Source: Scyliorhinus canicula (lineage: Eukaryota). From it: a stretch of 64,000 nucleotides of DNA. The stretch spans positions 81,075,072-81,139,071 of the forward strand of contig NC_052154.1 of assembly GCF_902713615.1 (NCBI RefSeq), given 5' to 3'. The notes beneath the pieces were generated by a model that saw only the letters and a list, made by a program, of their open reading frames with translations, was not told the DNA's origin and did not search any database. A program made the translations under genes and the position numbers. The first letter of the stretch is position 1. Every line of letters begins with the position of its first letter. This document shows positions 8,111-41,600 of the stretch, in pieces.

Positions 8111-8171
8111 ATGTCGTCGAATTCGATCTTTCTCTTCATGTTGCTGACTCTCCCGATGATCATTTCAACAG
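8111..8171 (+). CDS. IgSF V-C1-TM receptor, exon 1: signal peptide MSSNSIFLFMLLTLPMIIST(G)
   Basis: ATG at 8111, hydrophobic core, phase-1 donor G|GTATCG at 8172 that matches the phase of the V exon. Confidence 0.75.
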
Positions 8172-8368
8172 GTATCGGAATATCCTCTATCCCAGAGGTC
8201 ATATTTAATAAAACGTTTTTCACCGTTCGCCCATCAGTTTTATTAGATGTAATCCGTCCGTCTGTTATCGTTTTTCTCCTTTGTGTTTCCCTGCAAATAT
8301 GTGAAAAGTCTCTGGTTTCTTTTTCAATAAAATTAATTAACACAAACCTCAAATATATTTGATAGCAG

Positions 8369-8689
8369 GTGCTCCAGCAACTTCGATCAGCGTGTCTCAA
8401 AGTCCCAAACAGGTATCTATATCAAGGGGGACAAACATCACCTTCTACTGCATAATACCACTTTCTCATGACAATGTCGGGGTCGAAGTGCGTTGGTGGA
8501 AACAAGGTGAGAATAAATATCTCGCAAATGGAGTCGATGGAAGAAAACGATTTGATCTCAAAAGCAAAGGAGGTGGTGTATTTGAGCTGCGAAACGCGAC
8601 TCTCCAGGACTCAGGAACCTATCACTGCGGAGTGATCCGTGACGGAAAATATAGTGGAAATGGGACAGGATCCAGTTTAACTGTTTGGG
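8369..8689 (+). CDS. IgSF V-C1-TM receptor, exon 2: V-set domain with germline-joined J-like strand (NKp30/antigen-receptor-like)
   Basis: CAG acceptor at 8366-8368 and GTAAGT donor at 8690. Translation SVSQSP...FYC...VRWW...LQDSGTYHC...GNGTGSSLTV has the canonical Cys/Trp/DxGxYxC residues. Confidence 0.93.
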
Positions 8690-9161
8690 GTAAGTGAGCG
8701 GAATGGCGGGGAACATCAGATTTGTCATTGTTCTTTTGTACCGCCTTTGATGTTATAAAATATGGTGCACAATGTATAGTTATGCAGCAGAACATGATAT
8801 TTCATTCGGTGTGTTATTCCAAACTGCTGGAAGTACCCAGCAATTCAGGGAATATCTGTGGAGAGGGAGACAATGTTAAACCTCAGGTCTATAACTTTTT
8901 CAAGTGGAATGTTACCGGATTCATTCATAATACAATTTTTACACCAGGTTTAGCCTGAGGGTGGTCCACCGCACTCTAGATACCCCAACCAGAGGAACCA
9001 ACCTCGCCTTGTCTACCCTGGCAACCACTTTAAGAATCTTGTATATTCTAAAGAAAACACCTCTGATTCTTCTTAAACCCGCACTCTGCCTGTGCGAGCC
9101 TCCAGAAATTACGAGAACTTCACTGTTCTTATCAGTGTCGACAGGTTGTTTGTTTCTCTCT

Positions 9162-9348
9162 GGGGGACACGGCTGGCGGACCTTTTGTTACTGGGCTAAA
9201 TAGCTGACTTGGAATGCAGAACAAGACAGCAGGGCGGGTTCAATTCGCCTACCGGCCTCCCCGAACAGGCGCCGGAACGTGGCGACTACGGGATTTTCAC
9301 GGTAACTTCATTGAAGCCAACTTGTGACAATAAGCGATTATTATTATT
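9162..9348 (+). mobile_element. Short tRNA-derived SINE in the V-C1 intron
   Basis: B-box-like GGGTTCAATTC, tail 'ttttcac.gtaacttcattgaagcc.acttgtgacaataagcga(tta)n'; homologous to 15880, 22867 and 38061. Confidence 0.75.
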
Positions 9349-9443
9349 AACATAATGGGAAGAGAATGCGATACCATTTTCCTCTCAATCCTGATGGATA
9401 ACGTCTCTCCACTGACCTGATTTTCCTCATTTTCTGTTCGCAG

Positions 9444-9755
9444 TTGCACCAACTCCGTTAAAGATTCTCCTGAAGCCTCTCGCAAGTAAGCCATCTACGT
9501 CTCTGACTCTTGTGTGTCAAACGGCTGCGTTTTACCCGGATGATTTGACCCTCTTTTGGTATAAAGATGGCACCAATATCACAGCTGAGATGAACCCAAT
9601 TAAACAGCGGAACTCTGAAGGACTCTACGAAGTTTCCAGTTCTTTGGAGGAGCCGCAGCCTGTGCGGGACGACGCTGTTTACATCTGTTTGGTAACTCAC
9701 ATCTCCCTCCCGACTCCCGCCATTGCCATCCACACTGTTACCAACTCCTGCCCAG
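9444..9755 (+). CDS. IgSF V-C1-TM receptor, exon 3: C1-set domain
   Basis: Polypyrimidine tract plus CAG acceptor at 9441-9443 and GTATGA donor at 9756. LVCQTAAFYPDDLTLFWYKDG...YEVSSSL...YICLVTHISL is the classic C1-set signature. Confidence 0.93.
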
Positions 9756-10149
9756 GTATGAGGCCAGCAGGTCAAGAAGCAATCTGCAAATTCTGAAAGG
9801 ACCATTTATTGGAACTTATTGACATTAATAATAATAGATATAATTATAAAATACACTCCGGAAAATATAATATCTAAGGGAATCTTAACGGTTCCATGAA
9901 AACATTTGTTTAAATTGTTTTTTAAAAAGGGAATGAGCAGGCGGATTTTCTCATCCATTCAATCATTTTACATGTTGTACATATAACTAAATTTTGGGCC
10001 ACTTCTTAAACTGATATTATTGATCCCCAGTTTTACTATTCCTCACACGAGTTTACAGAACATGAAGTGTCGATTTGCATCAGCGGCCTCACTGCGAACG
10101 GGTCAGAAGTCTGCTTTGTGGATAGTCCCTAATCTGACCACTTTCTGCA

Positions 10150-10235
10150 GAACGGTCGTTTGGACCCGCAGCATTAACTCTGTTTCTCTCTGCCAGACTT
10201 TCTGAATTTATCCAGCATTTTCTGTTTTTATTTCT
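10150..10235 (+). mobile_element. Possible Penelope-like element terminal fragment
   Basis: 'ttggacccgcagcattaactctgtttctctct...ccagcattttctgtttttatttc' resembles, from memory, fish/shark Penelope ends. Confidence 0.35.
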
Positions 10236-10977
10236 CTCCATTCTTCAGCAGTTTGGAGCTGGGAAGCATTTCATATATTTCATTTCGGATTTGCTACCAT
10301 TAAAAGCGGTAGAACATGTCTGATTACCGTCTAATTAACAGCCAACCGAAATTAAATTTTAGGAAGATTTGTAAGCATTGCTTTTGAAGGGGATTTCCTT
10401 CCCTTTTTGGCGGGGTCTTCAGTTAATAAGCTGCCAATAATTGATTAAAATTAAAAGAATAATTTGTTAAAATTAAATGAAAAACTATTCCGCTCAACCA
10501 TGTCTGATTTGGCCCGATTAATCACCAAAACGTGGAAGAGCGGAAGAAAATTTAAGTGCAAGGAAAGGCCTTTTTGACAATCGGAATGTTAACCCACGCC
10601 AATATTTAGGACATCCGAAACTGGTACTCTTCCTCGGAGATTATTCTGACATTGTGCTATCCTTTCTGAAAACATATTACTTTTACGTGCAAATTATGAT
10701 TGTAAATGTCATTATCCCTGGACTTCTGTAGATGAGTGTTTAATAAGAAGTACAATGCGAAACATAAATGTGTGAAATTTGATCCGGCTGCTTTTATTTG
10801 TTGACATAGAATCTGGAAAAATGAATTAATATTACCTTTAAATTATGCTTTCCCCAGACTGCCCTGCATAGTCGCTGCATAGATGAGCACTGGTTTACCT
10901 AATTCATTATCGCGAGAGCCAGGATAGGTAATGGCCGAAACAAATTAACACTGAGCACCCACCATTTGCAATTGCAG

Positions 10978-11088
10978 ATTCTGCTGGTAAATATCGTTAC
11001 CTCTGGGCTATTAGATGTACCGTGGGTGGATTGGTGTTTCTGGTGCTTATAATCATCATTGGAGCGGAATTCTGTTTGAAGAATAAGG
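10978..11088 (+). CDS. IgSF V-C1-TM receptor, exon 4: transmembrane segment with Arg
   Basis: TTGCAG acceptor and G|GTAAGC donor, phase 1-1. Translation (D)SAGKYRYLWAIRCTVGGLVFLVLIIIIGAEFCLKNK(G). Confidence 0.85.
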
Positions 11089-11164
11089 GTAAGCATTGGT
11101 TTGATTGTTTGATTTTGAGATAAATCTTCAAAATGAAGATAAGGGCGTCCTCATAGCTTCACAA

Positions 11165-11620
11165 GGTCGTTAGAATGCAGAAGGATGATGCTATTCGGCC
11201 CATGGATTCTGCACTGGGTCCCTGAAAGTACATTCTACCTAATCCCACACTCTTCCGTTAGCCCCGTCACATTGCACGTCATTTCATTTCAGAAAACAAT
11301 CTAATTCCCTTTTGAATACCCCGATTGAACCTGCCTCAATCAACCTTTAAGGATGTTCGTTCCAGACATCAAAAATAATCCTCAGGTCACTTCTACTACT
11401 TTTCCCCATTATTTTGCATCTGTGCCCTCTTGTTCTTGTTATACACCTCGAGGAAAACATTTATCTCTATTTACCATGCTATTTACCACCCTCAGGACTT
11501 TGAATGACTTTCCGAACATACCTCTCAGCCTCCTTTTTCCAACGCAAACAGACCCAATCTCTTTAATCTATATTCAAAGCTCCAACTGTGTATCTCTGGA
11601 ATTATTCTTGAGAATGGCCC
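11165..11620 (-). mobile_element. Degenerate CR1 3' fragment
   Basis: RLKRLGLFALEK on the minus strand, with a tail similar to other CR1 ends. Confidence 0.55.
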
Positions 11621-11634
11621 GAGCAGATTGACAC

Positions 11635-11998
11635 TTAAAGGGTACTGCGAGGCCCGGATAGAGTGGACGTGGAGAGGATGTTTCCTCTTGCACGAAAAAC
11701 TGGAACCAGAGGACTCCATCTCAGACTAAAGGGGCGATCCTTTAGAACAGAGATGAGGAGGGATTTCTTCAGCCAGAGGGTGGTGAATCTGTGGAACTCT
11801 TTGTCACAGAAGGTGGTGGAGGTTAAATCACTGAGTGTCTTTAAGACAGAGATAGATATGTTCTTGATTAATAAGGGGATGAGGGGTTATGAAGAGAAGA
11901 CAGGAGAATCGAGATGGGAAAATATCAGCCATGACTGAATGGCGGAGCAGACGCGATGAGCTGAGTGGCCTAATTCTGCTCCTATGTCTTATGGTCTA
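11635..11998 (+). mobile_element. CR1 3' end
   Basis: DVERMFPL...TRGLHLRLKGRSFRTEMRRDFFSQRVVNLWNSL, with tail 'cctatgtcttatggtct'. Confidence 0.85.
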
Positions 11999-12410
11999 AC
12001 AGCCTTCTGTATATGAGAATTGCTCGAATACATATTTGAAGCAAACACAAACATAATTCGCTGAAACTCCCGCCGAATTTAGCATGTTATTATGAAAGAA
12101 TTGTTACACCGTCAGATTATAACGATTCAGATTATCTGACAACACCAACGACAATTTTCACTTTCTGTAAAATGACGTGTGAAATTTGATTAATTGTTTC
12201 ATGTTCTTTGGGTGCCTGTGGAGCTTTTAAGTTAAATACTGTCAATGTCCATTCGTGAGTCGATTTGCATGACTGCTGATGGCCTCACCGACTTGGATTC
12301 CTAATAAAGCCTGGAAAGGATAACACCTCAAACTTACTGCTGATACTAATTTTACTTTCTCCGCCCATAAATGTGGAATTCCCTCTTTAATGTAGAATCC
12401 AAGTTTTACT

Positions 12411-12720
12411 GGGCAGCACGGTAGCACAGTGGTTAACACCGTTGCTTCACAGCGCCAGAGACCCCGCTTCGATTCCCGGCTTGGGTCACTGTCTGTGCGG
12501 AGTCTGCACTTTCTCCCGTGTCTGCCTGGGTTTCCTCCGGGTGCTCTGGCTTCCTCTCACTAGTCCTGAAAGTCGTGCTTGTCAGGTGAATTGGACATTC
12601 TAAATTTTCCCTCCGTTTACCCGACAGGCGTGTAGTGTGGCGACGAAGGGATTTTCACAGTAACTTCATTGCAGTGTTAATAACTGCCTATTTGTCACAC
12701 TATTAAAGATTATTATTATT
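12411..12720 (+). mobile_element. V-SINE-type tRNA SINE with (TTA)n tail
   Basis: Head gggcagcacggtagcacagtggtt...ttcgattccc, V-core gggtcactgtctgtgcggagt...gggtttcctccgggtgctc. Confidence 0.85.
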
Positions 12721-12983
12721 TGTTATGGGATCTGAGAAAGTTCCACACACTTGATCTGCTTGGCAGTTTTTTCAACATATTGTTCTCTGCGAGAAAAACA
12801 GCCACCGGGCATTGTTAGTAAAATTAAAGCTTTTGGTTTGTTTTACCAATGTCCCTAGCCTCTCACTCACAGTTACGCATGTGGTACTATATATGTAGGA
12901 CAATGTGGTGTTATTACAGCAGTAATTCAAGGTGTGGATTTGTAATACTGCGCTAATGGGCGTGCACCACGCAATGGAATTTT

Positions 12984-15159
12984 TAAAAATAAATGTTTTT
13001 TATTGGGTTTTTGAACAAAGTATATTTACCGTTATGTACACAGATTAAGAAATATAGAAGAGAAGGGCACATTTAAACATACCAGAAAAAAGCAATAATA
13101 AAAAAAATAATAAATTAAAAAAAATAGAATAACTGGTAGGGTATTGTGCACCCGCTCAACAGCAGCAACTTTGTACAAGTGGCAAAATTATTTACAATAC
13201 ATAAGTAGGCGACTGTTTGGGGGGGGAGGGGGGGAGGGGGGAGACTGGGGAGTGGTTATACATTTGGGTGCCGGAGAAATAATTAAAGTGGGCAATACTC
13301 GAATGGGTTTTGTGTTGCTTCTCCCGGACAGATCTCACTGCCATTGTCATCTTGCACTCACCTCCACTTCAGCCGTTCCTCCTGTCTTTTGCCTGTATTC
13401 TCCTTGTTCTCTGTTCCTGTAGATGCCAAGTTTGTTATCGTATCCCATGCCCTCCTTTCAGCTATCATTTCTCTGCCTCCCCCCCCACTCCCTGCTTCTC
13501 CACTCTTGTTCCCTGTCCCTTCCCTCCCTCCCCCCCCCCCCCCGCGCTTTTCCCCCCCACCCCTCCTGTGGTTCGACTTTCTTTCCACTTAGGTTTAGCT
13601 GTGTGTCCCCTCTCCCGGGCTATCTACCCCTCTCATGCTTTGGCTACTTTCCCCTGATTCTTGGCTACCTGGCTATCCTTCTGCTTGTTCGTTGGCCACA
13701 AACAGGTCCCAGAACAATTGAGTGAATGGCTCCCACATTCTGTGGAAGTCGTCGTCTGACCCTCGGATGGTGAATTTGATTTTCTCCATTTGGACAGATT
13801 CCGAGAGGTCGGAGAGCCAGTCTGCAGCTTTGGGTGGGGCTGCTGACCGCCAGCCAAACAGGATTCTACGGTGGGCGATCAGGGAGGCAAAGGCAAGGGC
13901 GTCCGCCCTCCTCCCCAGGAATAGATCTGGCTGGTCTGAAACCCCAAAGACCGCCACTTTCGGGCATGGCTCCACCCTCATCCCCATCACTTTGGACATT
14001 GCCTCAAAGAAGGTTGTCCAGTACCCCACATGTCTGGGGCAAGACCAGAAGATGTAGGCGTGGTTGGCCGGGCATCCTTGGCACCGTTCACATCTATCCT
14101 CCACCTCCAGGAAGAACCTACTCATACGGGGTCTTGTTAACGGGCTCCATGTCTCACTTTTAGCTGCGTCAGGCTGAGCCTTGTGCACGTGGAGGTGGTG
14201 TTGACCCTGCGCCGTGCTTCGCTCCAGAGTCCCCACCTATTTTAATCCCCAGGTCCTCCTCCCATTTCTTTCTTGTTGCGTCCAGTATGGTGTTGGCCCT
14301 TTCTACTAGTCGGTCACACATGTCACTACAGTTTCCTTTACCTAATATGCTTGCATCCAGTAACTCTTCCAGTAATTTCTGTCATGGCGGTTGTGGATAC
14401 GTCCTTGTCTACTTTTGTAGGAAGTTTTTGAGTTATAGATAGCTTAGCTCATTCCCCCTGGCTAGCTGTAATTTCTCTATCAGTTTGTCCAGTGATGCGA
14501 TCGTGCCATCCGTGTATAGGTCACTGACTGGCAAGTGTCCCTCCATCCTGTCCCCACCTTTTGAAGGTGGCGTCAGTCATCGCTGGTGTGAACCTATGGT
14601 TGTTGCAGATGGGAGCTTTGTCCAACATTTTGGTCAGGGCAAATTGCTGCCGTAGTTTGTTCCAGAATTGGAGAGTGGCTATCACCACCGGGCTGCTGGA
14701 ATGTTTTTTGGGTGGGGATGGGAGTGCTGCCGTGGCGAGGGCCCGGAGGGAGGTCCCCATGCGGGAGCCGTCTTCTGCGCACACCCGCTCGGCTTTTGGC
14801 TCCTTGATTCATGACCTTATTCGCTTGGCCGTCGCTGCCCCGTGGTATAATTGTAGGTTATACAATTGTAGGCTAGCCCTCCCCCGTATTTTGTTTTTGT
14901 AGGACCTTCTTTGGGATCCTAGCATTCTTCCCCCACCCCGATACGAACGCCATGATTAGTTTGTCTAGTGCTTTGAAAAAGGCCTTGGGGACGTAGATCG
15001 GAATGGATCTGAGTAGGAAGAGGGACCTGGGCAGTACATTCATCTTGATCATCTGGACTCTCCCCACGAGGGAGAGTCAGAGTGTGTTCCATCTTTGCAG
15101 GTCCTTTTTTACTTCCTCCGTCAGACTGCTGAGGATCCATTTGTAGATCCCTTTCCAGT
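12984..15159 (-). mobile_element. 5'-truncated L1-clade LINE with perfect 15-bp TSD
   Basis: TSD acgcaatggaatttt at 12969-12983 and 15160-15174. ORF2 C-terminus MNVLPR..F and CERCQGCPANHAYIFWSCP. AATAAA near the 3' end. Confidence 0.92.
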
Positions 15160-15179
15160 ACGCAATGGAATTTTGAGAG

Positions 15180-15502
15180 TTTTTTTGAGAATTTACGGTG
15201 CATTCGGCCCATCAAGTCTGCACTGGCTCTTGGAAAGAGCACCCTACCCAAGCCCATACCTCCACCCTATCCCCATAACCCAGTTACCCCACCTAATACT
15301 AAGGGCAATTTTTAGCCTGGCCAATCTACCTAACCTGCACATCTTTGGACTGTGGGAGGAAACCAGAGCACCTGGAGGAAACACAGGCAGACATAGGGAG
15401 AATGGGCAGACTCCGCACAGACAGTGACCCAAGCTGGGATTCGAACCTGGGACCCTGGAGCTGTGAAGCATTTGTGCTAACCACTATGCTACCTTGCTGC
15501 CC
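15180..15502 (-). mobile_element. HE1-like V-SINE with CR1-type tail
   Basis: Reverse complement of the gggcagca.ggtagcatagtggttagc head, V-core and CR1-like tail (gggccgaatg). Confidence 0.85.
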
Positions 15503-15879
15503 TGGACTCAGTTAAAAATTATATTCCGCATATTATAAATAAAAGAGCATTCATTTGAGGGATTGGCAACAATGGTAAGTATCTGTTCAATGTCCTACGG
15601 AGCCACAAACTCGGTTTAACGTGATCCTGCTAACGTCTATGTGTCTCCAATCCTAGAGCTGTATGGCTAACTATTAATAGGCTTCTGAAGTAGCCGTGCA
15701 AACTGTTTCCTTTTCTCGAACTGAGGGAATGAAAGATGGAAAATAAATACCTGCGCCAGCTTTAACCACATCCAAAGAATGAATAATGCAAAACTCAATG
15801 TTTTTTGTTGTTGAATTTTTAGTATTCTCATGCATTTCCACAAAAGCCGCCTCCTTTGTTGTTTATAGTATCAAATATA

Positions 15880-16050
15880 GGGGCTGTTTAGCACACAGCT
15901 AAATCGCTGGCTTTGAAAGCAGACCAAGCAGGCCAGCAGCACGGTTCGATTCCCGTAACAGCCTCCCTGAACAGGTGCTGGAATGTGGCGACTAGGGGCT
16001 TTTCACAGTAACTTCATTTGAAGCCTACTCGTGACAATAAGCGATTTTCA
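15880..16050 (+). mobile_element. Short tRNA-derived SINE
   Basis: ggggctgtttagcaca...cggttcgattccc...ttttcacagtaacttcatttgaagcctactcgtgacaataagcg. Confidence 0.8.
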
Positions 16051-16621
16051 TATATTCACGGTATCTGTATAGCTGGATAACCTGACAATAGGAATACATT
16101 TTTGTGCCTTTCTGAAGTGACTTTAGCAAGTGTGACCAAAACTGGTCACAATATCTGTGGTCCACTTCACAATTTGGTTCTCCCCTTGTTGAACCTATAC
16201 CATACTGTATTGCCTTTGTATTTTAATACCCTCTGGCCTTTCTATTTGCTGTGCATTAACTAGGCATGTTTTGCGCCCTGAATCATGTGTCTCTTTGAAT
16301 TCTATCCTTAGATGTTTTAAACATCATCAATTAAGTTTGCATTCTTTATGGTTGGAGAACTCTACTGTTTTCTGCGTTGAATTTCCCTGTCTTGTCTTCC
16401 AAAGCTCACGACTGGAAACTGACTAATTATTAAGCATTGAAGTGTAACAATACTGAAACGTGAGCTGAATCGTGATGCGATCGTGCCATCCATGTATAGG
16501 TTCGGATTATTTACCCAAGAAGAGGATTCCACTTTATATATTTTTGTGGAAATATAAATACTTTATTAAAACCCGTTTCACATTCTCTTTCATGTTTACA
16601 TTGACTCTTACCAATTTTTAG

Positions 16622-17150
16622 ATGCACCATAGAATGCATCCTATCTGGCTGCATCACAGCCGAGTATGGCAAACGCTTGGTCCAAGACCGGAAGAAACTA
16701 CAGAGAGTCGTGAACACAGCCGAGCCCATCACGAGAAAGTCCCTCCCATCTATTGACTGTGTCTTCATCTCCCGCTGCCTTGGGAAAGCGAGCCGCATAA
16801 TCAAAGTCCCCTCTCACCCGGGTTATTCCCTCTTCCAATCTCTTCCATCAGGCAGGAGATACAAAAGTCTGAGAACACGCACTAACAGGTTCAAAAACAG
16901 CCTCTTCCCCGTTGTTACCAGACTCCTGAACGAACCCTAATATGGACTGAACTGATCCCTTCACACATCTTCTCTCATGAGCAGTACTACACTCCGTATG
17001 CTTCACCCTGTGTCTATGTATTTTCTTTGTGTATTTAAATATGTCCTATGTTTTTTCATGTATGGAACGATCTGTCTAGACTGTATGCAGAACAATACTT
17101 TTCACTGTACCTCGGTGCATGGGATGGTAAATCAAATCCAATCCAATATA
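16622..17150 (+). mobile_element. Rex1/Babar-type LINE 3' end
   Basis: KKLQRVVNTA...IIKVPSHPGYSLFQSLPSGRRYKSLRTRTNRFKNSLFP, with an (AATCC)-type tail. Confidence 0.8.
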
Positions 17151-18009
17151 TCCATTCAAAACTTGTTTTGATAATCATTTGATATTTGCTGAGACGTTGG
17201 TGCCGGTGGTTAAAGAAAGAGTGCAAATCACATGGGTAGTTTCTTCAACACATGCAAAATAAAGATATGTCCAATCATCGGAAGGATATTCTTGCGATGA
17301 CATTACACGTCCACGATGCTGAATCTGCCTCCAGTTTTATCCTATCTGCAGCGTTTTACTATAATTCTATGGAATTAAGTGTCAGTTACAATAGGCGCAC
17401 GAATTTCAGGACTCAACATTGACCATCAGTATGTATATTAACTGTAGTGTATGCATTTTTCTAGGGAATGAAGCGTGACACGTTCCTGAGAACACTGAAA
17501 AGATTAACATGTGGAACCCATATGTCGCCTGTGCTTTTGCGAGATTAACAAGTGTTGCGAAATATGGAGTGGCTGGGCAGGTTTAGAAAACTAGGTAAAG
17601 AACATATTCAGTGGCTCATCTCGCTGCAGTAGTACTCGTTTAAATTTAGCTGTTATTGATTTAAATATTAAAATGTACCTCGTGTTCCGCACCTATATTT
17701 ATTCGACACACGGTTCAGTGTAATTACAGAAACAGAGAATCCTCATATTAAACGGACATTCTACATGTTTTCCATTGTGAACTTTTCTTACTCACTGACA
17801 ACTGGAAACCGCAGCCGGATCGCCTGAAGGCGCATGAATTGTTCCTAGTATTTCACATTCCAATATTATGCCACGTGTGTTCTTAAATACATTTTCGGGT
17901 AGTTTGTTAATTTATCTACACACGACTATTAGCGCATCTCCGCTATACACATGCCACTTTCCTTAATGCAAGTACTGTAATGTTGTAATAATGTTCAAAT
18001 TATGGATAA

Positions 18010-27235: not shown

Positions 27236-30200
27236 TGTCATGTGCGAGTACCTTTAAGAAATGGATGTTTGGGCAATGTACGTTTAAGAAAATGAGCAGC
27301 TCATATTACTGAAGTGATGTCAGAGGGTGGGGGTAGCTGAGTTGAGCTCACTTCTGCTTTTAGTTTCAGTTTGAGAGAGCAGCTGAAAAGTGCCTTGCTG
27401 GTTTGCGGAGAGTTGCATGAAGAAAAATAGCTTGGTGTGTCTGTGTTTGCAGTAAGCTGGATCTGCTGTGATCCCTGCCAGGAAAGACTATCTCTGAATC
27501 ATTTGGGTGATTTAAACTCATAATAGTAATGTCTTTAACCGGATGTGTTTCTGTTTCAAGGTGTTAAGTCTTTTGGAGGTTTGAAGGAACATTTTGAGGG
27601 ATTATTTAGTGTTGTATTATTTTCGGGGTTATCTTTGAAGTAAAGGGTGTTAAGGGATCTAATGTTTATTTAAAAAGGGTAAGTTGAATTCATGGAATAA
27701 ACATTGTTTTGTGTTTAAAAACCCACATGTCCATAATTGTAATACCACACCTGGAGACCAAGCCGTGTGCTTCAAAAGCAACAATACATTAAAGGGAGAG
27801 GTTGGTTGAACTCCATGATACATTTTGGGGTTCTGAAAACTCCGCTCCCATAACAATTGGGGGTTCAAGGGGGTTAAAAGTCTATCTATTGGATTGGCTT
27901 TTGTGAACTTAAGACAGTGAAGGATTGTTGCTTTTCCGGTGTGGTATTTTAGTTTAAGTGTGTTGTGGACAATGGCTCTTTCAGAGGCTCAGATGTTTTT
28001 CGGGTGAAGAATGTCACACGCAGTACCTTACGGATAGAGACGAAATGCAGACTGTTAGATTCGGCAAAAACATTGCAGTTAACATTACCTGACAAAATGC
28101 GAAAAGATGAGGTAATTATGGTGGTTGTTAAGCATTTAATGTTGCCTGAGATAGAGTCTGACTCATTGGAAATGGCACAAATTCAGTTGCAAATTAAACA
28201 AATGGAACATGAGAAAGAATTAAAGTGGCTTGAATACGACAGAGAGAGAGAGATATGAAAAAGGAAGAGAGAGAGGGGGGGGGGGGGGAGAGAGAGAGAG
28301 GAAAAAGAAAAGGAGAGAGAAGAGAGGAGAAAAGAAAGAATAGCCCTAGCAGAACAGAAAGAAAACGAAAGGGAGATAAAGATCATGGGAATAGATAAAG
28401 AGAGGGAGTTTGAACTTCAGGAAATGGCCATGAAACGTGAAAGTCAATTATAATTGGCAGGCATAAAGTTGGATGATAGTGATGAGGATAGTGAGAAGGA
28501 GCGCCATAGTCGAAGGCTTGGTGGGAATCTATTTAAATATGTCCAAGCATTGCCAAAGTTTGACGAGAAGGAAGTGGAAGCCTTTTTCATTTCATTTGAG
28601 AAGGTAGCTAAACAAACGAAATGGCCATAGGACATGCGGGTATTACCGATTCAAACAAAGCTGGTAGGTAGAGCCAGTGAAGTGTTTGCATCACTACCGG
28701 AGGAGGTATCTAGAACGTATGAGGAGGTGAAGAAATCCATCTTAAGTGCATATGAGCTAGTGCCTGAAGCTTATAGACAACGGTTTAGAAATTTAAGGAA
28801 ATAATTTGGTCTTACATACATGGAGTTTGAAAGGCTCAAACAGAGTAATTTTGATAGGTGGATAAGGGTTTTGAAAATAGACCAAACGTATGAAGCTCTC
28901 AGAGAAATTATACGTTTGGAGGAGTTTAAAAATTCAATTCCTGATGTAGTGAGAACTTATGTGTAAGAACAGAGGGTTAAAACTGCGAGATTAGCAGCAG
29001 AAATGGCAGATGATTATGAAATAGTTCATAAATCAAAGATTGGTTTCCGATATCAGTTTCAGCCGGTGAGGAATCGAAATTGGGGACATGAGAAATACCC
29101 AAGTGGTAAACGTAAAGGTAATCTGATGGGAGACAATAAAGAGAGTGTACCTCAGATTAAAAAATAAATCCAGGAGGGTAGAAAAGAAATGAAAAGTTTC
29201 AAATGTTTTCACTGTAATAAACTAGGCCATGTAAAGTCACAGTGTTGGTGGTTGAAGAAAAGCACTGGGAAGGCTGATGTGGTAAAACAGGAAAAGACAG
29301 TGGGATGTGTTGGAGTGATAAAGGAAAGCCCAAGGGAAGCGAAGGAGCTGCAAATGATTGCACAACCTGTTCAAGAAGTAATTGTTAAGAAGGTGCCAGA
29401 CGTCTTTAAAGAATTTAATTGTGTGGGTAAAGTTTACTCATGTGTATCAGGAGGAGCAAGTAAATAAGTCACAATTTTAAGAGATACAGGGACTAGTCAA
29501 TCTTCAATGGTAAGAGATGAGTAATTATGTAGTTTGGGAAGAATGTTGCCAGAAAAGGTGGTGATATGTGGAATTCAGAGTGAGAGGTGTAGCGTTCCAT
29601 TATATAATGGAAAGTCCAGTGAAGAGTGGTGAAGTGGTAGTAGGAGTAATAGAGAAACTATCTTGTCCAGGAATACAGTTTATCTTGGGTAATGATATAG
29701 CTGGATCGTAGGTGGGAGTGATGCCTACTGTGGTTGATAGGCCAGCGGAACATCAGACAACTGAAGGGTTGAAAGACGAATATCCTGGGATTTTCCCGGA
29801 TTGTGTAGTAACCCGGTGGCAAAGTCACAGGTTAAGACAAGAGGAGAAATCAAAGAGTGAAGGTGAAGTTGAAGTGCAATTATCAGAAACGTTTTTTGAT
29901 TAGATAGTTGAAAAAGAATAAGAACAGGTGGAGGATGAGGCAGATATTTTCAGTTCAGGAAAATTGGTGGAGTTACAACAGAAAGATGTAGAAATAAAAC
30001 GGATATATCAGAAAGCACTTACGGAAGAGGAATCTGAGTGAATACCAGAGTGTTATTACCGTGAAAGTGATGTCTTGATGAGAAAATGGAGACGTGTACA
30101 TATGCAGGCGGATGAAAAGTGGGCAGACGTTCATCAAGTAGTATTGCCGGTAGGGTATAGAAAGGAGGTGTTGCAAGTTCAACACGAGGTACCAATGGGA

Positions 30201-33200
30201 GGTCATTTGGGAATCAGGAAAACTCAAGCTAAAATCCAGAAACATTTTTATTGGCCTGGACAACATAAAGATGTAGTTATATTTGGTCAATCATGTCACA
30301 CATGTCAAGTGATAGGGAAACCTCAAGCAGTGATAAAACCAGCGCCCTTAATACCCATTCCAGCATTTGAGGAACCTTTTACGAGGGTCCTAATTGATTG
30401 TGTTGTGCCGCATCCTAAAACAAAATGTGGGAATTAATTATTTTGACTATAATGGTTGTGTCTACTATGTTGCCAAATGCCATTCCAGTACATAATATTA
30501 CAGCTAAAAGGATTGTGGAGGAGTTACATGAATTATTTGCCAGATATGGACTACCGACAGAAATTCAATCGGATCAAGGATCAAATTTTACTTCAAAGTT
30601 ATTCAAATAAGTTATGGATTGTTTAGGAATAAAACAATTTAAATCAACTGCGTATCATCCAGAATCGCAGGGAGGTTTGGAAAGGTGGCATCAGACATTA
30701 AAGACAATGTTCAGGGCGTGTTGTCAAGATTATCCAGAGGATTGGGATAAAGGAATTCCATTCGTATTGTTTGCAATTAGGGATACACCTAATGAGTCTA
30801 CCAAATTTAGTCCTTTTGAACTAATTTTTGATCATGAGGTAAGAGGACCATTTAAGTTGATTAAAGAAAAATTTGTGGGTGAGAAATCGGAAATTACACT
30901 ATTGGATTACGTGTCAAATTTTAGGGAATGATTAAATAGAGTAGGTGAATTGGCTGGACAACACTTGAAAGTTGCACAAAATGTGATGAAACGGGTAGTG
31001 GACAAGAAATCCAAAGTTCGTAGTTTTGTCAGTGGGGATAAAGTTTTAGTGTTGTTACCAGTGGTAGGTGAGCCTTTAAAAGCTAGGTTTTGTGGACCGT
31101 ATTAGATGGAAATGAAATTAAGTGAGGTCAATTATGTGGTTAAAAACACCAGATAGAAGGAAGACTCACCGAGTGTGTTATGTGAATATACTTAAAAGGT
31201 ACTTTGTAAGGGAAGGGGAGAAAAAGGAAGTTTTAATGATTCTAACTCAAAGTGACGAACCAAATCCAGATGACTGTGAATTTGACATACCTTAAATAAA
31301 ATTGGAAAATGAGGATGTTCATAAAAATTGGGATAAATTGGTGAGTTACCTTCCAGAGGAAAAACGCACTGACCTGAAAGACTTATTGATATCACATGGG
31401 CAAGTTTGTAGAGATAAATTGGGAAGTACTAAAGTGGCTATACATGACGTAGATGTGGGAAATGCTGTTCCTATCAAACAATATCCATATAAACTTAATC
31501 CTTTGAACTTGGCACAGGTTAACAGAGAACATAAGAACATAAGAACTAGGAGCAGGAGTAGTCCATCTGGCCCCTCGGGTCTGCTCCGCCATTCAATGAG
31601 ATCATGGCTGATCTTTTGTGGACTCAGCTCCACTTTCCGGCCCGAACACCATAACATTTAATCCCTTTATTCTTCAAAAAACTATCTATCTTTACCTTAA
31701 AAACATTTAATGAAGGAGCCTCAACTGCTTCACTGGGCAAGGAATTCCATAGATTCACAACCCTTTGGTTCCTCTTAAACTCAGTCCTAAATCTACTTCC
31801 CCTTATTTTGAGGCTATGTCCCCTAGTTCTGCTTTCACCCGCCAGTGGAAACAACCTGCCCGCATCTATCCTATCTATTCCCTTCATCATTTTAAATGTT
31901 TGTATAAGATCCCCCCTCATCCTTCTAAATTCCAACGAGTACAGTCCCAGACTACTCAACCTCTCCTCATAATCCAACCCCTTCAGCTCTGGGATTAACC
32001 TAGTGAATCTCCTCCGCACAACCCCCAGTGCCAGTATGTCCTTTCTCAAGTGAGGAGACCAAAACTGAACACAATACTCCAGGTGTGGCCTCACTAACAC
32101 CTTATACAATTGCAACATAGCCTCCCTAGTCTTAAACTCCATCTCTCTAGCAATGAAAGACAAAATTCCATTTGCCTTCTTAATCACCTGTTGCACCTGT
32201 AAACCACTTTTCAGTGACTCATGCACCAGGTCTCTCTGCACAGCGGCATGCTTTAATATTTTATCTTTTAAATAATAATCCCGTTTGCTGTTATTGCTAC
32301 CAAAATGGATAACCTCACATTTGTCAACATTTTATTCCATCTGCCAGACCCTAGCCCATTCACTTAACCTATCCAAATCCCTCTGCAGACTTCCAGTATC
32401 CTCTGCACTTTTCGCTTTACCACTCATCTTAGTGTCATCTGCAAACTTGGACACATTGCCCTTGGTCCCCAACTCCAAATCATCTATGTAAATTGTGAAC
32501 AATTGTGGGCCCAACACGGATCCCTGAGGGACACGACTAGCTACTGATTGCCAACCAGAGAAACACCCTTAATCCCCACTCTTTGCATTCTATTAATTAA
32601 CCAATCCTCTATCCATGCTACTACTTTACCCTTAATGCCATTCATCTTTATCTCATGCAGCAACCTTTTGTGTGGCACTTTGTCAAGGGCTTTCTGGAAA
32701 TCCAGATATACCACATCCATTGGCTCCCCGTTATCTACTGCATTGGTAGTATCCTCAAAAAATTCCACTAAATTTGTTAGGCACGACCTGCCCTTTATGA
32801 ACCCATGCTGCGTCTGCCCAATGGGACAATTTCTATCCAGATGCCTCGCTATTTCTTCCTTGATGATAGATTCCAGCATCTTCCCTACTACCGAAGTTAA
32901 GCTCACTGGCCTATAATTTCCTGCTCTGCGCCTACCTCCTTTTTTAAACAGTGGTGTCACGTTTGCTAATTTCCAATCCACCGGGACCACCCCAGAGTCT
33001 AGTGAATTGTGGTAAATCATCATTAGTGCATCTGCAATTTCCATAGCCATCTCTTTTAGCACTCTGGGATGCATTCCATCAGGAGACTTGTCTACCTTTA
33101 GCCCCATTAGCTTGCCCATCACTACCTCCTTAGTGATAACAATCCTCTCAAGGTCCTCACCTGTCATAGCCTCATTTCTATCAGTCGCTGGCATATTATT

Positions 33201-36200
33201 TGTGTCTTCCACTGTGAAGACCGACCCAAAATACCTGTTCAGTTCCTCAGCCATTTCCTCATCTCCCATTATTAAAACTCCCTTCTCATCCCCTAAAGGA
33301 CCAATATTTACCGTAGCCACTCTTTTTTGTTTTATATATTTGTGAAAACTTTTACTGTCTGTTTTTATATTCTGAGCAAGTTTCCTCTCATACTCTATCT
33401 TACTCTTCTTTATACCTTTTTAGTAGCTTTCTGTTGCCCCCTAAAGATTTCCCAGTCCTCTAGTCTCCCACCAATCTTTGCCAAGGTCGATTTTCCCTCT
33501 TTCTACCGTCCTTCCTTTTTGTTGGTATAAACCTTTGCTGAGCACTGTGAAAAATCGCTTGGAAGTTTCTCCACTGTTCCTCAACTGGTACACCATAAAG
33601 CCTTTGCTCCCAGTCTACCTTAGCTAGTTCTTCACTCATCCCATTGTAATCTCCTTTGTTTAGACACAAAACACTAGTATTTGATTGTACTTTCTCGCCC
33701 TCCATCTGTATTTTAAATTCCACCATATTGTGATCGCTCCTTCTGAGAGGATCCCTAACTATGAGATCATGAAACAATCCTGTCTCATTACACAGGACAA
33801 GATCTAGGACTGCTTGTTCCCTCGTAGGTTCCATTACATACTGTTCTAGGAAATTATCGCGGATACATTCTATAAACTCCTCCTCAAGGTTGCCTTGACC
33901 GACCTGGTTAAACCAATCGACATGCAGATTAAAATCCCCCATGATAACTGCTGTACCATTTCTACATGCATCAGTTATTTCTTTGTTTATTGCCTGCCCC
34001 ACCATAACGTTACTATTTGGTGGCCGATAGACTACTTCTGTCAGTGACTTTTTCGCCTTACTATTCCTGGTTTCCACCCAAATGGATTCAACCTTATCCT
34101 CCGTAGCACCGATGTCATCCCTTACTATTGCCCAGATGTCATCCTTAAATTACAGAGCAACACCACCTCCCTTACCATCCACTCTGTCCTTCCGAATAGT
34201 TTGATACCCTCGGATATTTAACTCCCAGTCGTGACCATCCTTTAACCATGTTTCAGTAATGGCCACTAAATCATAGTCATTCACGATGATTTGTGCCATC
34301 AACTCATTTACTTTATTCCGAATACGACGAGCATTCAGCTAAAGTACATTTGTGTTGTTTTTTTTACTTCCTTTTGCTTCTGTACCTTCCAACTGCCTGC
34401 ATCGGTTCCCACGCCCCTGCAACATTAGTTTAAACCCTCCCCAACAGCTCTAGCAAACACCCCCCCCCCCCCCCCCCCCCCAGGACATCGGTTCCAGTCC
34501 TGCCCAGGTGCAGACCGTCCGGTTTGTACTGGTCCCACCTCCCCCAGAAACGGTCCCAATGCCACAGGAATTTGAATCCCTCCCTCTTGCACCATCTCTC
34601 GAGCCATGCATTCATCCTATCTATCCTGACATTCCTACTCTGACTAGCTCGTGGCACTGGTAGCAATCCTGAGATTACTACCTTTGAGGTCCTACTTTAT
34701 AGTTTAACTCCTAACTCCCTGAATTCCGCTTGTAGGACCTCATCCCGTTTTTTACCTATATCGTTGGTGCCTATGTGCACCACGACAGCTGGCTGTTCAC
34801 CCTACCCCCCCCCCCCCCCCCCGGAGAATGTCCTGCAGCCGCTCCGAGACATCCTTGACCCTTGCACCAGGGAGGCAGCATACCATCCTGGAGTCTCAAT
34901 TGCGTCCACAGAACCGCCTGTCTATTCCCTTTACGATCGAGTCCCCTATCACTATAGCCCTGCCATTTTACTTCCTGCCCTGCTGTGCAGCAGAGCCAGC
35001 CACGGTGCCATGAACCTTGCTGCTGCCTTCCCCTGGTGAGCTATCTCCCCCAACAGTATCCAAAGCGGTATATCTGTTTTGAAGGGAGATGACCGCAGGG
35101 GACACCTGCACTGCCTTCCTACTCTTGCTCTGTCTTTTGGTCACGCATTTGCTATCTCCTTCAGTAACTTTCACCTGCGGTGTGACCAACTCACTAAACG
35201 TGCTATCCACGACCTCCTCAGCATCGCGGATTTTCCAAAGTGAGTCCATCCGCAGCTCCAGAGCCGTCAAGCGGTCTAAAAGGAGCTGGAACTGAGCACA
35301 CCTCTTGCACGTGAAGGAGCCAGGGACAGTGGACATATCCCTGAGCTCCCACATCGCACACGAGGAGCATGACACGGGTCTGGGATCTCCTGCCATGTCT
35401 TAAACCCTAGTTAACTGATACAACTACAATTTCAAAATAAAAATTAATAAATTAGACAATGAAAAGAAAAACAACTTAACAGTCACTTACCAGGGTTAAA
35501 AAGCACCTCCGAAAAAGCACCTTCCCTCACTCTGCATCGAATTACCTCACTGCACCAAATTACCAAGTTGCAATTCCCACTCTGGGTGTGCTTACTCCGG
35601 ATGTGTCTCCTTGAAAAGCGCAAGCTTACTGAGTGCCCTTTCTGTCTGTCTTTTATGCAGACCTCAGCTAACCGATGACTCAAAAAATACCTAAACTTCA
35701 AAGAGAAAAATACAATGTGCCCTTTGTGCCCCTAAATAGGCCTCAGGTGACTGACAGATAACTGCCTCTCAGCAATTAATGTGGGGGCAGCTTCAACCAA
35801 TCATACACTAAGCTACACACTGCACTTTTAACTGAAAAACAGCAGAATTAGATTTTCCACTTACCTTTCCTGATTACCTCACTGCACCAAATTACCAAGT
35901 TGCAATTCCCACTCTGGATGTGCTTCACTCCGGATGTGTCTCCCTGAAAAGCGCAAGCTTACTGAGTGCGCTTTCTGTCTGTCTTTTATGCAGACCTCAG
36001 CTAACTGATGACTCAAAAAGTACCTAAATTTACCAGGGTTAAAAAGCACCTCCGAAAAAGTACCTTCTCTCACTCTGCATCGAATTACCTCACTGCAGAG
36101 AAATCGAGAGTATGCTGAAAAATGGCATAATTGAAGTGGGTTGCAGCCAATGGAGCTCACCCATAGTGATGGTACCTGAACCAGACGGTACCCAACCGTT

Positions 36201-38689: not shown

Positions 38690-41600
38690 GCACAAAGAAT
38701 AAAGAACAAAGAAAAGTACAGCACAGCCCTCCAAGCCTGCACCGACCATGTTGCCCGTCTAAACTAAAATATTCTACCCTTCCGGGGTCCGTTTCCCTCT
38801 ATTCCCATCCTATTCATGTATTTGTCAAGATGCCCCTCAAATGTCACTGTCGTCCCAGCTTCCACCACCTCCTCCAGCAGCGATTTCTAGGCACCCGCTA
38901 CCCTCTGTGTGAAAAAGATGCCTTGTACATCTCCTCTAAGCCTCGCCCCTTGCACTTGAAACCTATGCCCCCTAGAAATTGACCCCTCTACCCTGGGAAA
39001 AGGTCTCTGACTATCCACTCTGTCTATAACCCTCATAATTTGGCAGACCTCAACCTCCTTCGTTCCAGTGAGAACAAACCGCGTTTATTCAACTTCTCCT
39101 CATAGCTAATGCCCTCCACACCAGGAAACATCCTGATAAATCTCTTCTGCACCCTCTCCAAAGTCTTCACATCCTTCTGGTGGTGTGGTGACCAGAATTA
39201 ACTCTAACCCTAACTATCCTCCAAGTGTGGCCTAACTAAGGTACAATACAGCTCCAACATGCCTTGCCAATTTTTATACTCAATGCCCCAGCCAATGAAG
39301 GCAAGCATGCCATATGCCTTCTTCAAAACGTCCTCCACCTGTGTTGCCCCTTTCAGTGACCTGTGGACCTGTACACCAAGATCTCTCTGACTGTCAATAC
39401 ACTTGAGGGTTCTACCATTCACTGTATATTCCTTACTTGTATTCGATCTTCCAAATGCATTATCTCACATTTGCCGGATTAAACTCCATCTGTCATCTCG
39501 CCGCATAAGTCTCCAAATGATCTAAATCCTGCTGTATCCTCTGACAGTGCTAATCGCTATTCGCAATTCCACCAACCTTTGTGTCGTCCGCAAACTTACT
39601 AATCAGACCAGTTACATTTTCCTCCAAATCATTGTTATATACTATGAACAGCAAAGGTCCCAGCACTGATCCCTGTGGAACACAACTAGTCACAGCCTTC
39701 CAATCAGAAAAGCATCCTTCCATTGCTACTCTCTGCCTTCTATGACCTAGCCAGTTCTTTTTTTTAAATTATTTTTATTGATGCATTTGGAAAATTGTTA
39801 TAACAGTAACAAACAAAACCATAATAACATAAACATAAACATGATAAACTAGACATTTCCCACCCAACCCCTTCTGTACATCCCTTAACCATATTGCACC
39901 TATCCACACCCCCCCCCCCCCCCCACCCCTTCAGGATGCTGCTTCTGCTGACATTTTAATTGTCCCAGAGAAAGTCAATGAACGGCTGCCACCTCTGGGA
40001 GAACCCCAACATTGCCCCCTTCAAGGCAAACTTTATTTTCTCCAGCTTGAGAAAACCAGCCATGACACTGACCCAAGTTTCCACACTTGGGGTCTTCGAG
40101 TCCCTCCACATTAACAGGATCCGTCTCCGGGCTACCAGGGAGGAAAAGGCCAGAACGTTGGTCTTTTTCACTCCCTGAACTCCCAGGTCTTCTGACCCTC
40201 CAAAGATCGCTATCTCTGGACTCATCACCACCCGCGTACCTAGCACCTTGGACATTGCCTTGGCAAACCCCTGCCAGAATCCTCCAGGCTTCGGGCATGC
40301 CCAGAACACATCAACATGGTTTGCTGGGTTTCCCGCACACCTTGCACATCTACCTTCTACCCCAAAAAATGTGCTCATCCTCGCCGCCGTCATGTGGGCC
40401 CGGTGTACCACCTTAAACTGTATTAGACTGAGCCTGGCACATGTTGACGAGGAATTAACCCTGCTTAGGGTGTCCGCACACAGACCCACCTCTAACTCCC
40501 CACCAAGCTCCTCCTCCCACTTGCCGTTCAGTTCCACCACCGCCTCCGCCTCCAACAACTCCTGTTAGATATCCAACAGTTTCCCCTCCCCCACCCAGGT
40601 ACCGGCCACTACTCTGTCCTGTATCCTCCGTGGCGGGATCAGCGGGAAAGCCAACACCTGTTTCCTCAGAATGTACTGGACTTGTAAATATCTGAAAACA
40701 GTCCCCAACGGCAGCTTGAACTTATCCTCCAGCGCCTTCAGACTGGGAAAACTCCCGTCTATGAATAGATCTCCCATCCGTCTAATTCCTGCTCTCTGCC
40801 AACTTCAGAACCTGCCATCTATCCTGCCTGGCGCGAACCTGTGGTTATTGCAAACCGGGTTCCAGACTGACGCACCCTCCACCTTCCTATACCTCCTTCA
40901 TTACCCCCAGATCCTCAATGCCGCCACTACCACTGGGCTAGTGGTGTAACAGGCTGGCAAGAATGGCAGAGGTGCCGTTACCAGTGCTGCCAAATTGGTG
41001 CTTTTGCATGACTCTGCCTCCATCCGCTCCAATGCCAACCCCTCCCCTATTATCCACTTCCTAATCCACTGCTCAGCAGTAGTTGCAGAAGTTCGGCAGC
41101 GCCAGCCCACCCTCCCCCCAACTGTGCTCCAACAACATTTTCTTCACCCATACAAAGCCCAAAATAATCTTGTTTACCCGCTTGAAAAAGGCCTTAGGGA
41201 TGAAGATGGTGAGGCACTGGAAGATAAACAAAAGTCTGGGGAGCATCGTCATTTTCACGGTCTGCACCCTCCCCGGCAGCGATAGTGGGAGCATATCCCA
41301 TCTTTTAAATTCCCCCTCCATTTGCTCCACCAGCCGGGTTAGGTTGAGCCTGTGTAATGCCTCCCATTTCCGAGGCAGCTGCATTGGCAAGTACCGAAAG
41401 CTCCTCTCTACCATCTTGAGCGGCAGCTCCTTCAGTCTCCTCTCCTGCCCCTTTGCGTGGATCATGAACAATTCATTTTTTCTAATGTTCAATTTGTACC
41501 CTGAGAACCTGCCAAATTCCCCCAAGATCTGCATAATCTCCCCCAACCCCTCCACCGGGTCCGAGATGTAGAAGAACAGATCGTTTGCATACAGCGAAAC

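Follow-up and report, generated by a model that had tools for sequence, protein, structure and literature searches.

Explanations of how immunoglobulins (Ig) and T-cell receptors (TCR) arose invoke, as starting material, non-rearranging genes that encode a VJ-type variable domain followed by a C1-set domain, and cartilaginous fishes represent the oldest group having both. A gene of this plan, located in a 64,000-nucleotide stretch of the genome of the catshark Scyliorhinus canicula (hereafter the window), raises the question of whether it is a relic of the receptor that was split by RAG, a member of an NKp30-like lineage, as had been proposed as an alternative in the original prediction, or a receptor of some other kind. 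Our analysis identifies the locus as the catshark 'signal-regulatory protein beta-1-like' gene, an activating-type form within a large non-rearranging V-C1 receptor family, an assignment to which we attach a probability of roughly three in four.

Assembled from five exons, the product of the locus is identical to a 273-aa Scyliorhinus canicula protein in RefSeq, 'signal-regulatory protein beta-1-like isoform X1' (P0162), which is encoded on the 198.8-Mb contig of GCA_902713615.2 by an annotated CDS spanning 9368 bp, i.e., positions 8111-17478 of the window. In view of this identity the gene is already annotated, and the suggestion that it is uncharacterised does not hold in the sense of unannotated. 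Correspondence to an already described shark gene, which had been named as an outcome that would remove its novelty, therefore applies as far as the database record is concerned; among the papers covered by a literature search, none on the V-C1 family was found.

The first four exons, i.e., those encoding the leader, V, C1 and transmembrane (TM) segments, were all found where they had been predicted, each with GT-AG boundaries and in phase 1, and they join in frame into an open product of 268 aa. Exon 1 (8111-8171, + strand, as are all features described here) carries the start codon together with the larger part of the signal peptide (a split leader), ends in phase 1 at the donor gtatcg and matches the N-terminus of P0162 exactly. 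Exon 2 (8366-8689) encodes a Pfam V-set domain with a J-like G strand, and its CDS from 8366 agrees exactly with P0162; its acceptor is of the NAGNAG type, allowing a start at 8366 (as in RefSeq isoform X1, with one Ala more) or at 8369. Exon 3 (9444-9755) encodes the C1-set domain, with C..FYP..W and YxCxVxH as hallmarks, and after it a stalk cysteine (NSCP), while exon 4 (10978-11088) provides the stalk, the TM helix (residues 234-271 in the AF2 model) and the start of the cytoplasmic tail. The predicted size of at least 268 aa thus stood for the four-exon part, to which a V acceptor 3 nt upstream (8366) and, beyond a last intron of 6.4 kb, a coding exon 5 (17465-17478) have now been added, the latter completing Gly270 and contributing Asn-Glu-Ala and a TGA stop codon in exact agreement with P0162. 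With this fifth coding exon (GNEA plus stop), the protein comprises 273 aa or 272 aa.

No other host gene is present in the window. The locus is situated in a transposon-rich region, and the genome contig is the sole record encoding P0162, two observations that would fit an untranscribed or decaying gene copy. However, the 822-nt CDS is intact over its five exons with canonical splice sites, every invariant family residue is retained, the orthologue from Mustelus (P0161) has the same structure and a gene model is present in RefSeq, making decay or silence highly improbable.

The V exon was recognized by the Pfam V-set model with an E-value of 5.8e-11 (43 bits, cut-off 26) and, as anticipated, contains a built-in J-like G strand, GNGTGSSLTV (8656-8685; pattern GxG[S/T]xLxV), of which GNGTGS represents the family consensus. 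Across 46 family V domains G98 is invariant, while G100 and V105 are nearly so. No recombination signal sequence (RSS; heptamer, 12/23 spacer, nonamer) was found beside the gene, in keeping with the reported lack of RSS in its introns, and the matches in the window were confined to repeat copies (three look-alikes versus 0.7 expected). A tblastn search with the four exon peptides returned no additional V, J or C exon within the 64 kb, so that the proposed scan of the flanks for RSS and paralogues, as run on the window, yielded only repeat-borne look-alikes and no paralogous exon. The presence of a C1-set domain was confirmed by Pfam (E-value 4.5e-11, 43.4 bits, cut-off 21). The description of the locus as a non-rearranging, single-exon VJ + C1 + TM receptor gene of an elasmobranch is thus supported.

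Since a VJ domain joined to a C1 domain is the chain plan of antigen receptors, the gene might represent a UrIg/UrIg2-like relic standing near the antigen receptor of pre-RAG times, or else an Ig/TCR gene that is joined in the germline. The best PDB sequence matches of the V exon are amphioxus IgVJ-C2, TCR V-alpha and IgNAR V, those of the C1 exon include, at an equal level, UrIg2 (26.4 bits), Ig lambda C (25.6 bits) and SIRP-gamma (25.3 bits), and the fold matches of the V model include CD79b, IgW VH, TCR V and CD8-beta. However, all scores lie within the generic IgSF range, antibodies numerically dominate the PDB, and the V domain of UrIg2 is missing from the V-exon PDB match list. The gene is furthermore devoid of RSS and of an Ig/TCR-type constant region or TM segment; neither RSS-flanked segments nor membership of a V-C cluster, by which Ig/TCR genes would be recognized, was observed in the 64 kb, and its relatives possess ITIM tails. 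For UrIg or UrIg2 a VJ domain followed by at least three C1-type domains would be expected, and the catshark gene encodes one. UrIg is secreted by the liver, UrIg has three and UrIg2 9-11 C1 domains, and elasmobranchs have a single or few such genes (PMC12227049), as opposed to the single-C1, many-gene family with ITIM tails described below, and we consider a position among or near the antigen receptors unlikely.

When the V exon was searched against 1.84 billion representatives, 85 matches fell below 1e-10. Among the proteins retrieved, V and C1 were found together in at least 77 representatives of clusters formed at 50% identity, all of them from cartilaginous fishes wherever names were looked up. 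Word-indexed searches with full-length family alignments similarly retrieved almost only cartilaginous-fish members, the exceptions being SIRP-beta-1 of bats (two proteins) and multi-Ig proteins of snakes (three). The automatic names of family members are inconsistent, ranging from SIRP-alpha/beta-like to tapasin-related, Ig lambda-like, NCR3LG1-like and CD276 homolog. Two types of family member can be distinguished: inhibitory forms, with an uncharged TM segment and a long tail in which ITIM/ITSM-like tyrosine motifs of the xTYAxLDL and TEYAxxQ types alternate, and activating-type forms, with an Arg in the TM segment and a short tail. Near-twins of the two types occur in other species, as exemplified by the Amblyraja proteins P0024, which has the Arg and a short tail, and P0027, which has tyrosine motifs, their ectodomains being 95% identical. 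A second near-twin pair, with 90% identity, is formed by P0001 and P0160 of Heterodontus. Skate P0027 itself has two C1 domains, which are almost identical to one another.

The catshark product is of the activating type, as Arg245 (codon AGA, 11013-11015) lies towards the outer end of the TM helix, where inhibitory paralogues have Gly in the alignment, and the cytoplasmic tail consists of eight residues without a tyrosine motif. The AF2 model (pLDDT 86) consists of two Ig domains and a TM helix. An odd feature is Glu263, at a position where a basic stop-transfer residue is usual. No relic tyrosine-motif exon was found downstream by tblastn with the tails of seven inhibitory members, nor was a close inhibitory twin found in S. 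canicula, where the best paralogue is 51% identical. In the tree, P0162 groups with Mustelus P0161 (99/85) within a shark orthogroup (100/99), and Arg forms are dispersed among inhibitory forms. The other shark models of this orthogroup, P0001 and P0003, lack a recognisable TM segment, and conservation of the Arg is therefore seen in Mustelus alone. The idea that the gene stands alone as a relic of the earliest antigen receptor was rejected, since it is one member of a large multigene paired-receptor family, and the predicted descent from the receptor split by RAG gives way to an activating-type membership of that family.

Many family members are named SIRP-alpha- or SIRP-beta-like by NCBI, and the locus could in principle encode a true SIRP, i.e., a co-orthologue of tetrapod SIRP-beta/alpha from which one C1 domain was lost. 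The N-terminal V-set domain with its J-like G strand and, at the level of the family, the pairing of ITIM-bearing and basic-TM, short-tailed forms are both SIRP characteristics, and the motifs of the inhibitory tails appear similar to the four tyrosine motifs of SIRP-alpha. In a Foldseek search of Swiss-Prot, SIRP-alpha of rat and mouse takes second and thirteenth place (22-23% identity), and bat SIRP-beta-1 is drawn in by the family profile with 82-86 bits. SIRPs, however, have two C1-set domains after the V domain, versus the one C1 exon found here, and SIRP-beta has a Lys in its TM segment rather than an Arg high in the helix. When single domains are scored with family HMMs, the bat SIRP-beta-1 being that of Myotis, its V domain obtains 15-19 bits versus 50-58 for snake multi-V proteins and approximately 50 for Ig/TCR V domains, while the C1 profile gives 43-45 bits for SIRP d3 and 26-29 bits for d2 versus 50.6 for Ig lambda C; with these HMMs and this Myotis protein, no sequence affinity to SIRP domains above that to other IgSF domains was found. 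When profiles built from the V and C1 alignments of the family are searched against the PDB, multi-domain proteins dominate through summed domain scores, and single domains can be ranked in only a few alignments. True SIRP membership is, on balance, a doubtful proposition, albeit one that merits consideration.

NKp30 (NCR3) has a non-rearranging VJ-type V domain, a TM Arg, a short tail and no C domain, and shark NCR3 is reported to be MHC-linked. The catshark product has the TM Arg and the short tail, and could be viewed as belonging to an NKp30 lineage that retained a C1 domain. One Pristis family member has a V-only isoform that NCBI names 'natural cytotoxicity triggering receptor 3-like', and shark NCR3 is, according to work cited in PMC12227049, a divergent multigene family. 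However, a C1-set exon is spliced in frame in the catshark gene, NKp30 chains are absent from the best 60 PDB sequence matches of both the V exon and its E-F-G strands, and NKp30 does not occur in the 30 top-ranking fold matches obtained with the V model. The sole hint is thus the sawfish isoform, and the predicted NKp30-like origin is improbable.

A B7-family or B7-H6-like molecule, and hence a ligand rather than a receptor, is suggested by the top VIA-align match, B7-H6 (Z-score 14.7 over 193 residues, 22% identity), by a Foldseek list filled by CD276 (E-value 2e-15), butyrophilins and PD-L1/2, by the names NCR3LG1-like or CD276 homolog on some members and by the shared phase-1 L-V-C-TM exon plan. 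These lists are nevertheless flat, with Z-scores of 13-14.7 and E-values of approximately 1e-15 throughout, and searches with the whole and V-only models place B7-H6, SIRP-alpha, CD276, butyrophilins, TCR and IgL together with no clear nearest family, NKp30 being absent from these rankings. Pfam also prefers the C1-set model for the C1 exon over the butyrophilin/CD80 C2-set models (43 versus 14-15 bits), and, as far as is known, the B7 family does not comprise pairs of Arg-TM and ITIM forms. A B7-type ligand is an unlikely reading of the gene.

The preferred reading, that of an activating-type V-C1 receptor, probably entails a type I membrane glycoprotein composed of a signal peptide, V and C1 domains, a short Cys-containing stalk, an Arg-bearing TM helix and the eight-residue tail. 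Such a high position of the Arg within the helix corresponds to the FcR-gamma/CD3-zeta pattern known from NKp30, NKp46 and LILRA. The V domain would bind a putative ligand, Arg245 would form an intramembrane pair with an acidic residue on an ITAM adaptor, and ligation would lead to activation of the cell, an effect that ITIM-bearing paralogues may counteract through SHP-type phosphatases.

The catshark gene is no new candidate ancestor of the antigen receptors. Rather, sharks, rays and chimaeras have a large V-C1 receptor family with activating and inhibitory forms that is poorly named in databases; a family name, a phylogeny and expression data would tidy its annotation and might reveal a paired-receptor system of NK-like or myeloid cells. 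Tentatively, and with the odds clearly against it, the family could be an old and separate lineage, orthologous to none of SIRP, NKp30, B7-H6, UrIg or PRARP, which would constitute a cartilaginous-fish counterpart of NK/myeloid paired receptors that branched near the antigen-receptor stem.

Compared with known systems, the catshark gene shares the VJ-type V domain, TM Arg and short tail with NKp30, from which it differs by its C domain. With B7-H6 (NCR3LG1), B7 proteins and butyrophilins it shares a V + C1-like ectodomain and the phase-1 plan, B7-H6 being the best two-domain structural match; that match does not stand apart from numerous others, and the organisation of the catshark family into Arg-TM and ITIM forms follows the design of receptors. 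UrIg and UrIg2 (PDB 9dmx) resemble it in their non-rearranging single-exon VJ, split leader, C1-type domains and occurrence in cartilaginous fish, but have 3 or 9-11 C1 domains and few genes, whereas the catshark family is large, single-C1 and membrane-bound. The NITRs of bony fish combine a non-rearranging VJ domain with a second Ig domain of I-type rather than C1, and exist in ITIM and charged-TM forms, while PRARP, as a pair, are VJ-C-TM genes of bony vertebrates. In work cited in PMC10751288, PRARP of birds, reptiles and fish appear as VJ receptors that do not rearrange and have an additional Ig domain. Both NITR and PRARP are like the catshark gene in this general plan. The SIRP family (tetrapod SIRP-alpha, SIRP-beta-1 and SIRP-gamma), from which the RefSeq label takes its name, resembles the catshark family in having a VJ-type V domain followed by C1-set and in comprising paired tyrosine-tail and basic-TM members.

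The catshark V-C1 receptor gene is real and intact and follows a non-rearranging VJ-C1-TM plan, encoded by five forward-strand exons. The leader exon (window positions 8111-8171, with a GT donor) is followed by the V exon (8369-8689, or from 8366 with the upstream acceptor), the C1 exon (9444-9755) and the TM exon (10978-11088), the latter three each bordered by an AG acceptor and a GT donor, and all four being phase 1. The original prediction of these four exons, with their coordinates, canonical borders and in-frame splicing, was borne out. Its product of at least 268 aa stands insofar as the joined exons 1-4 give an open 268-aa frame, but a further C-terminal mini-exon at 17465-17478 (acceptor ttttctag, then GG AAT GAA GCG TGA) is needed to supply the missing C-terminal GNEA. 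The V exon is preceded by a NAGNAG acceptor at window 8363-8371 (…gatagcag followed by gt…); use of 8366 adds one Ala at the signal-peptide end, as in RefSeq isoform X1, while 8369 yields the product as first predicted.

A search of the V exon against 1.84 billion cluster representatives returned 85 matches below 1e-10, mostly proteins of 220-400 aa with one matched stretch each. A subsequent word-indexed search recovered P0162, the 273-aa S. canicula RefSeq model ‘signal-regulatory protein beta-1-like isoform X1’, which matches all 268 residues of the four-exon product and adds one Ala and the C-terminal GNEA. The translated five-exon CDS equals P0162 exactly, and the CDS span in its record (assembly GCA_902713615.2) is 9368 bp, i.e., 8111-17478; the gene is therefore already in the public annotation, and is not uncharacterised in the sense of lacking a database record. 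The window contains no other host gene, the remainder being transposon sequence according to Pfam (57807-60245 and 30075-30437 on the forward strand, 32541-34077 and 41073-41948 on the reverse strand), including a LINE ORF2 with endonuclease and reverse transcriptase, more reverse transcriptase fragments and an LTR-element integrase zinc domain.

Pfam assigns V-set to exon 2 (E 5.8e-11, 43 bits, cut-off 26) and C1-set to exon 3 (E 4.5e-11, 43.4 bits, cut-off 21), the butyrophilin and CD80 C2-set models reaching only 14-15 bits on the latter. As predicted, the V exon closes with its own J-like G strand, GNGTGSSLTV, which matches the pattern GxG[S/T]xLxV, and the C1 exon carries the hallmarks C..FYP..W and YxCxVxH. 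A scan of the whole window for heptamer, 12/23 spacer and nonamer found no RSS adjoining the gene, and nowhere in the 64 kb is there a further V, J, C1 or TM exon. Three RSS-like matches occur in the whole window (0.7 expected), all with the heptamer CACAGTA, of which those at 16004 and 22992 (forward strand) share their flanking sequence and look like copies of a dispersed repeat. These two copies, which carry CACAGTA, a 22/23-nt spacer and ACAATAAGC, mimic a 23-RSS, and similar sequence lies near 9296 and 12650; when shark immune loci are scanned for RSS, such copies could be misleading.

Of the proteins retrieved, 77 match the gene's exons in both V and C1. Where names were looked up, they derive from sharks (Heterodontus, Mustelus, Scyliorhinus, Chiloscyllium, Stegostoma, Hemiscyllium, Carcharodon and Heptranchias), rays (Hypanus, Pristis, Hemitrygon, Amblyraja, Mobula, Narcine and Leucoraja) and the chimaera Callorhinchus. 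Two Ig cysteine pairs, Trp residues, GNGTGSxLxV in V, and FYP and VSH in C1 are conserved in the family alignment. Automatic annotation has labelled them in conflicting ways (among others SIRP-alpha-like, SIRP-beta-1-like, tapasin-related, Ig lambda-1 light chain-like, class II beta-like, CD276 homolog, NCR3LG1-like, NCR3-like, uncharacterised), a scatter which suggests that none of the tetrapod genes stands out as the closest match. In a maximum-likelihood (ML) tree of 61 ectodomains, the gene product is sister to Mustelus P0161 (99/85), and the two group with Chiloscyllium P0003 and Heterodontus P0001 in a shark orthogroup (100/99). Rather than a singular relic, the gene is an ordinary member of a large, under-described family, which as a whole merits proper phylogeny and an expression study. 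A literature search turned up no description of this V-C1 family of paired receptors, although some members may figure in shark NCR3, B7-H6/NKp30, UrIg (2023) or PRARP work. For elasmobranchs, UrIg and UrIg2 have been published as genes that do not rearrange and combine a VJ with multiple C1 domains (PMC12227049), and a cartilaginous-fish MHC paper treats VJ-C1 precursors, NKp30 and PRARP (PMC10751288).

Two designs were distinguished among aligned full-length members. In many, the TM is uncharged (…SGC/AGC-A-GG-L…) and a tail of 70-150 residues bears repeated xxYAxLxL, TVYAQ and TEYAxxQ motifs, a combination that, judged by sequence, corresponds to an inhibitory design. The second has a short tail and an Arg at the aligned site where inhibitory forms have Gly, and includes the gene (…AIRC…), Mustelus P0161 (…ISRC…), catshark P0007 and ray P0009 and P0152. 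Near-twins occur: in Amblyraja, P0024 (Arg, short tail) and P0027 (tyrosine motifs) share 95% identity across 213 residues of the ectodomain, and in Heterodontus, P0001 and P0160 share 90% across 166 residues. In the ML tree the Arg forms are interspersed among inhibitory forms, a pattern that fits repeated conversion of one design into the other, as known from other families of paired receptors. Downstream of the gene, the window holds no relic of a tyrosine-motif exon. By its design the gene is of the activating type within a large family of paired receptors that spans sharks, rays and chimaeras. The inhibitory twin P0027 (Amblyraja radiata) has two nearly identical tandem C1 domains, which stem either from a duplication of the exon in the very recent past or from an artefact of annotation or assembly.

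The AF2 model (pLDDT 86) comprises a V domain (31-129), a C1 domain (135-226) and a helix (234-271), with Arg245 four or five residues into the helix from its outer side and a tail beyond it of KNKGNEA. In NKp30, NKp46, LILRA and Fc-alpha-RI, an Arg near the outer end of the TM helix pairs with an Asp of FcR-gamma or CD3-zeta type adaptors. By analogy, Arg245 would pair with the Asp of such an adaptor, ligand binding by the V domain would elicit an ITAM signal, and ITIM-bearing relatives would oppose it; the gene may work like a SIRP-beta or NKp30-type activating receptor. A stalk cysteine (NSCP) common to the gene product, Mustelus P0161 and Heterodontus P0160 might, speculatively, form a disulfide-linked dimer. 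At the inner helix end (…GAEFC…), the gene product has Glu263 (codon 11067-11069) where relatives have Arg or Lys (…IIIG-x-R/K-C…), the Mustelus orthologue having Lys.

In the PDB, the V exon finds its best sequence matches in amphioxus IgVJ-C2, in TCR V-alpha and V-beta and in IgNAR V (25-31 bits), and the best matches of the C1 exon score equally as single domains (UrIg2 C1 26.4, Ig lambda C 25.6, SIRP-gamma d2 25.3 and d3 24.2). Family HMMs gave 15-19 (V), 26-29 (d2) and 43-45 bits (d3) on bat SIRP-beta-1 and 50.6 bits on Ig lambda C, while the family V profile scored at best 50-58 bits on V domains of snake multi-Ig proteins. Turtle and snake proteins (P0005, P0008, P0012, P0029 and P0210-P0212), variously named pIgR-like, titin-like or hemicentin-like by automatic annotation, carry 3-6 V-like domains that score 41-58 (turtle) and 33-58 bits (snake) on this profile, the best V matches seen outside cartilaginous fishes and far above bat SIRP V. 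Foldseek with the whole model returned CD276, SIRP-alpha, butyrophilins, Skint, TCR-beta, PD-L1/2 and NCR3LG1 from Swiss-Prot (~1e-15 to 1e-14) and listed Ig light chains from PDB, while VIA-align placed B7-H6 first (Z 14.7), with rows 2-50 at Z 13-14.7. The V-only model matched CD79b, TMIGD2, horn shark IgW VH, PD-1, TCR V, CD8-beta and CD7, which together are the general set of VJ-type V domains. Among the matches listed, NKp30 is in none of the sequence or fold lists, nor did it appear when the PDB was searched with only the E-F-G strands; the proposed NKp30-like lineage that kept a C1 domain found no support in these lists. The label ‘SIRP-like’ describes architecture and is not demonstrated orthology. 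The gene fails a defining feature of each candidate family: SIRP needs two C1 domains and UrIg at least three, whereas the gene has one; NKp30 has no C domain, whereas the gene has one; and Ig and TCR need RSS, which the gene lacks.
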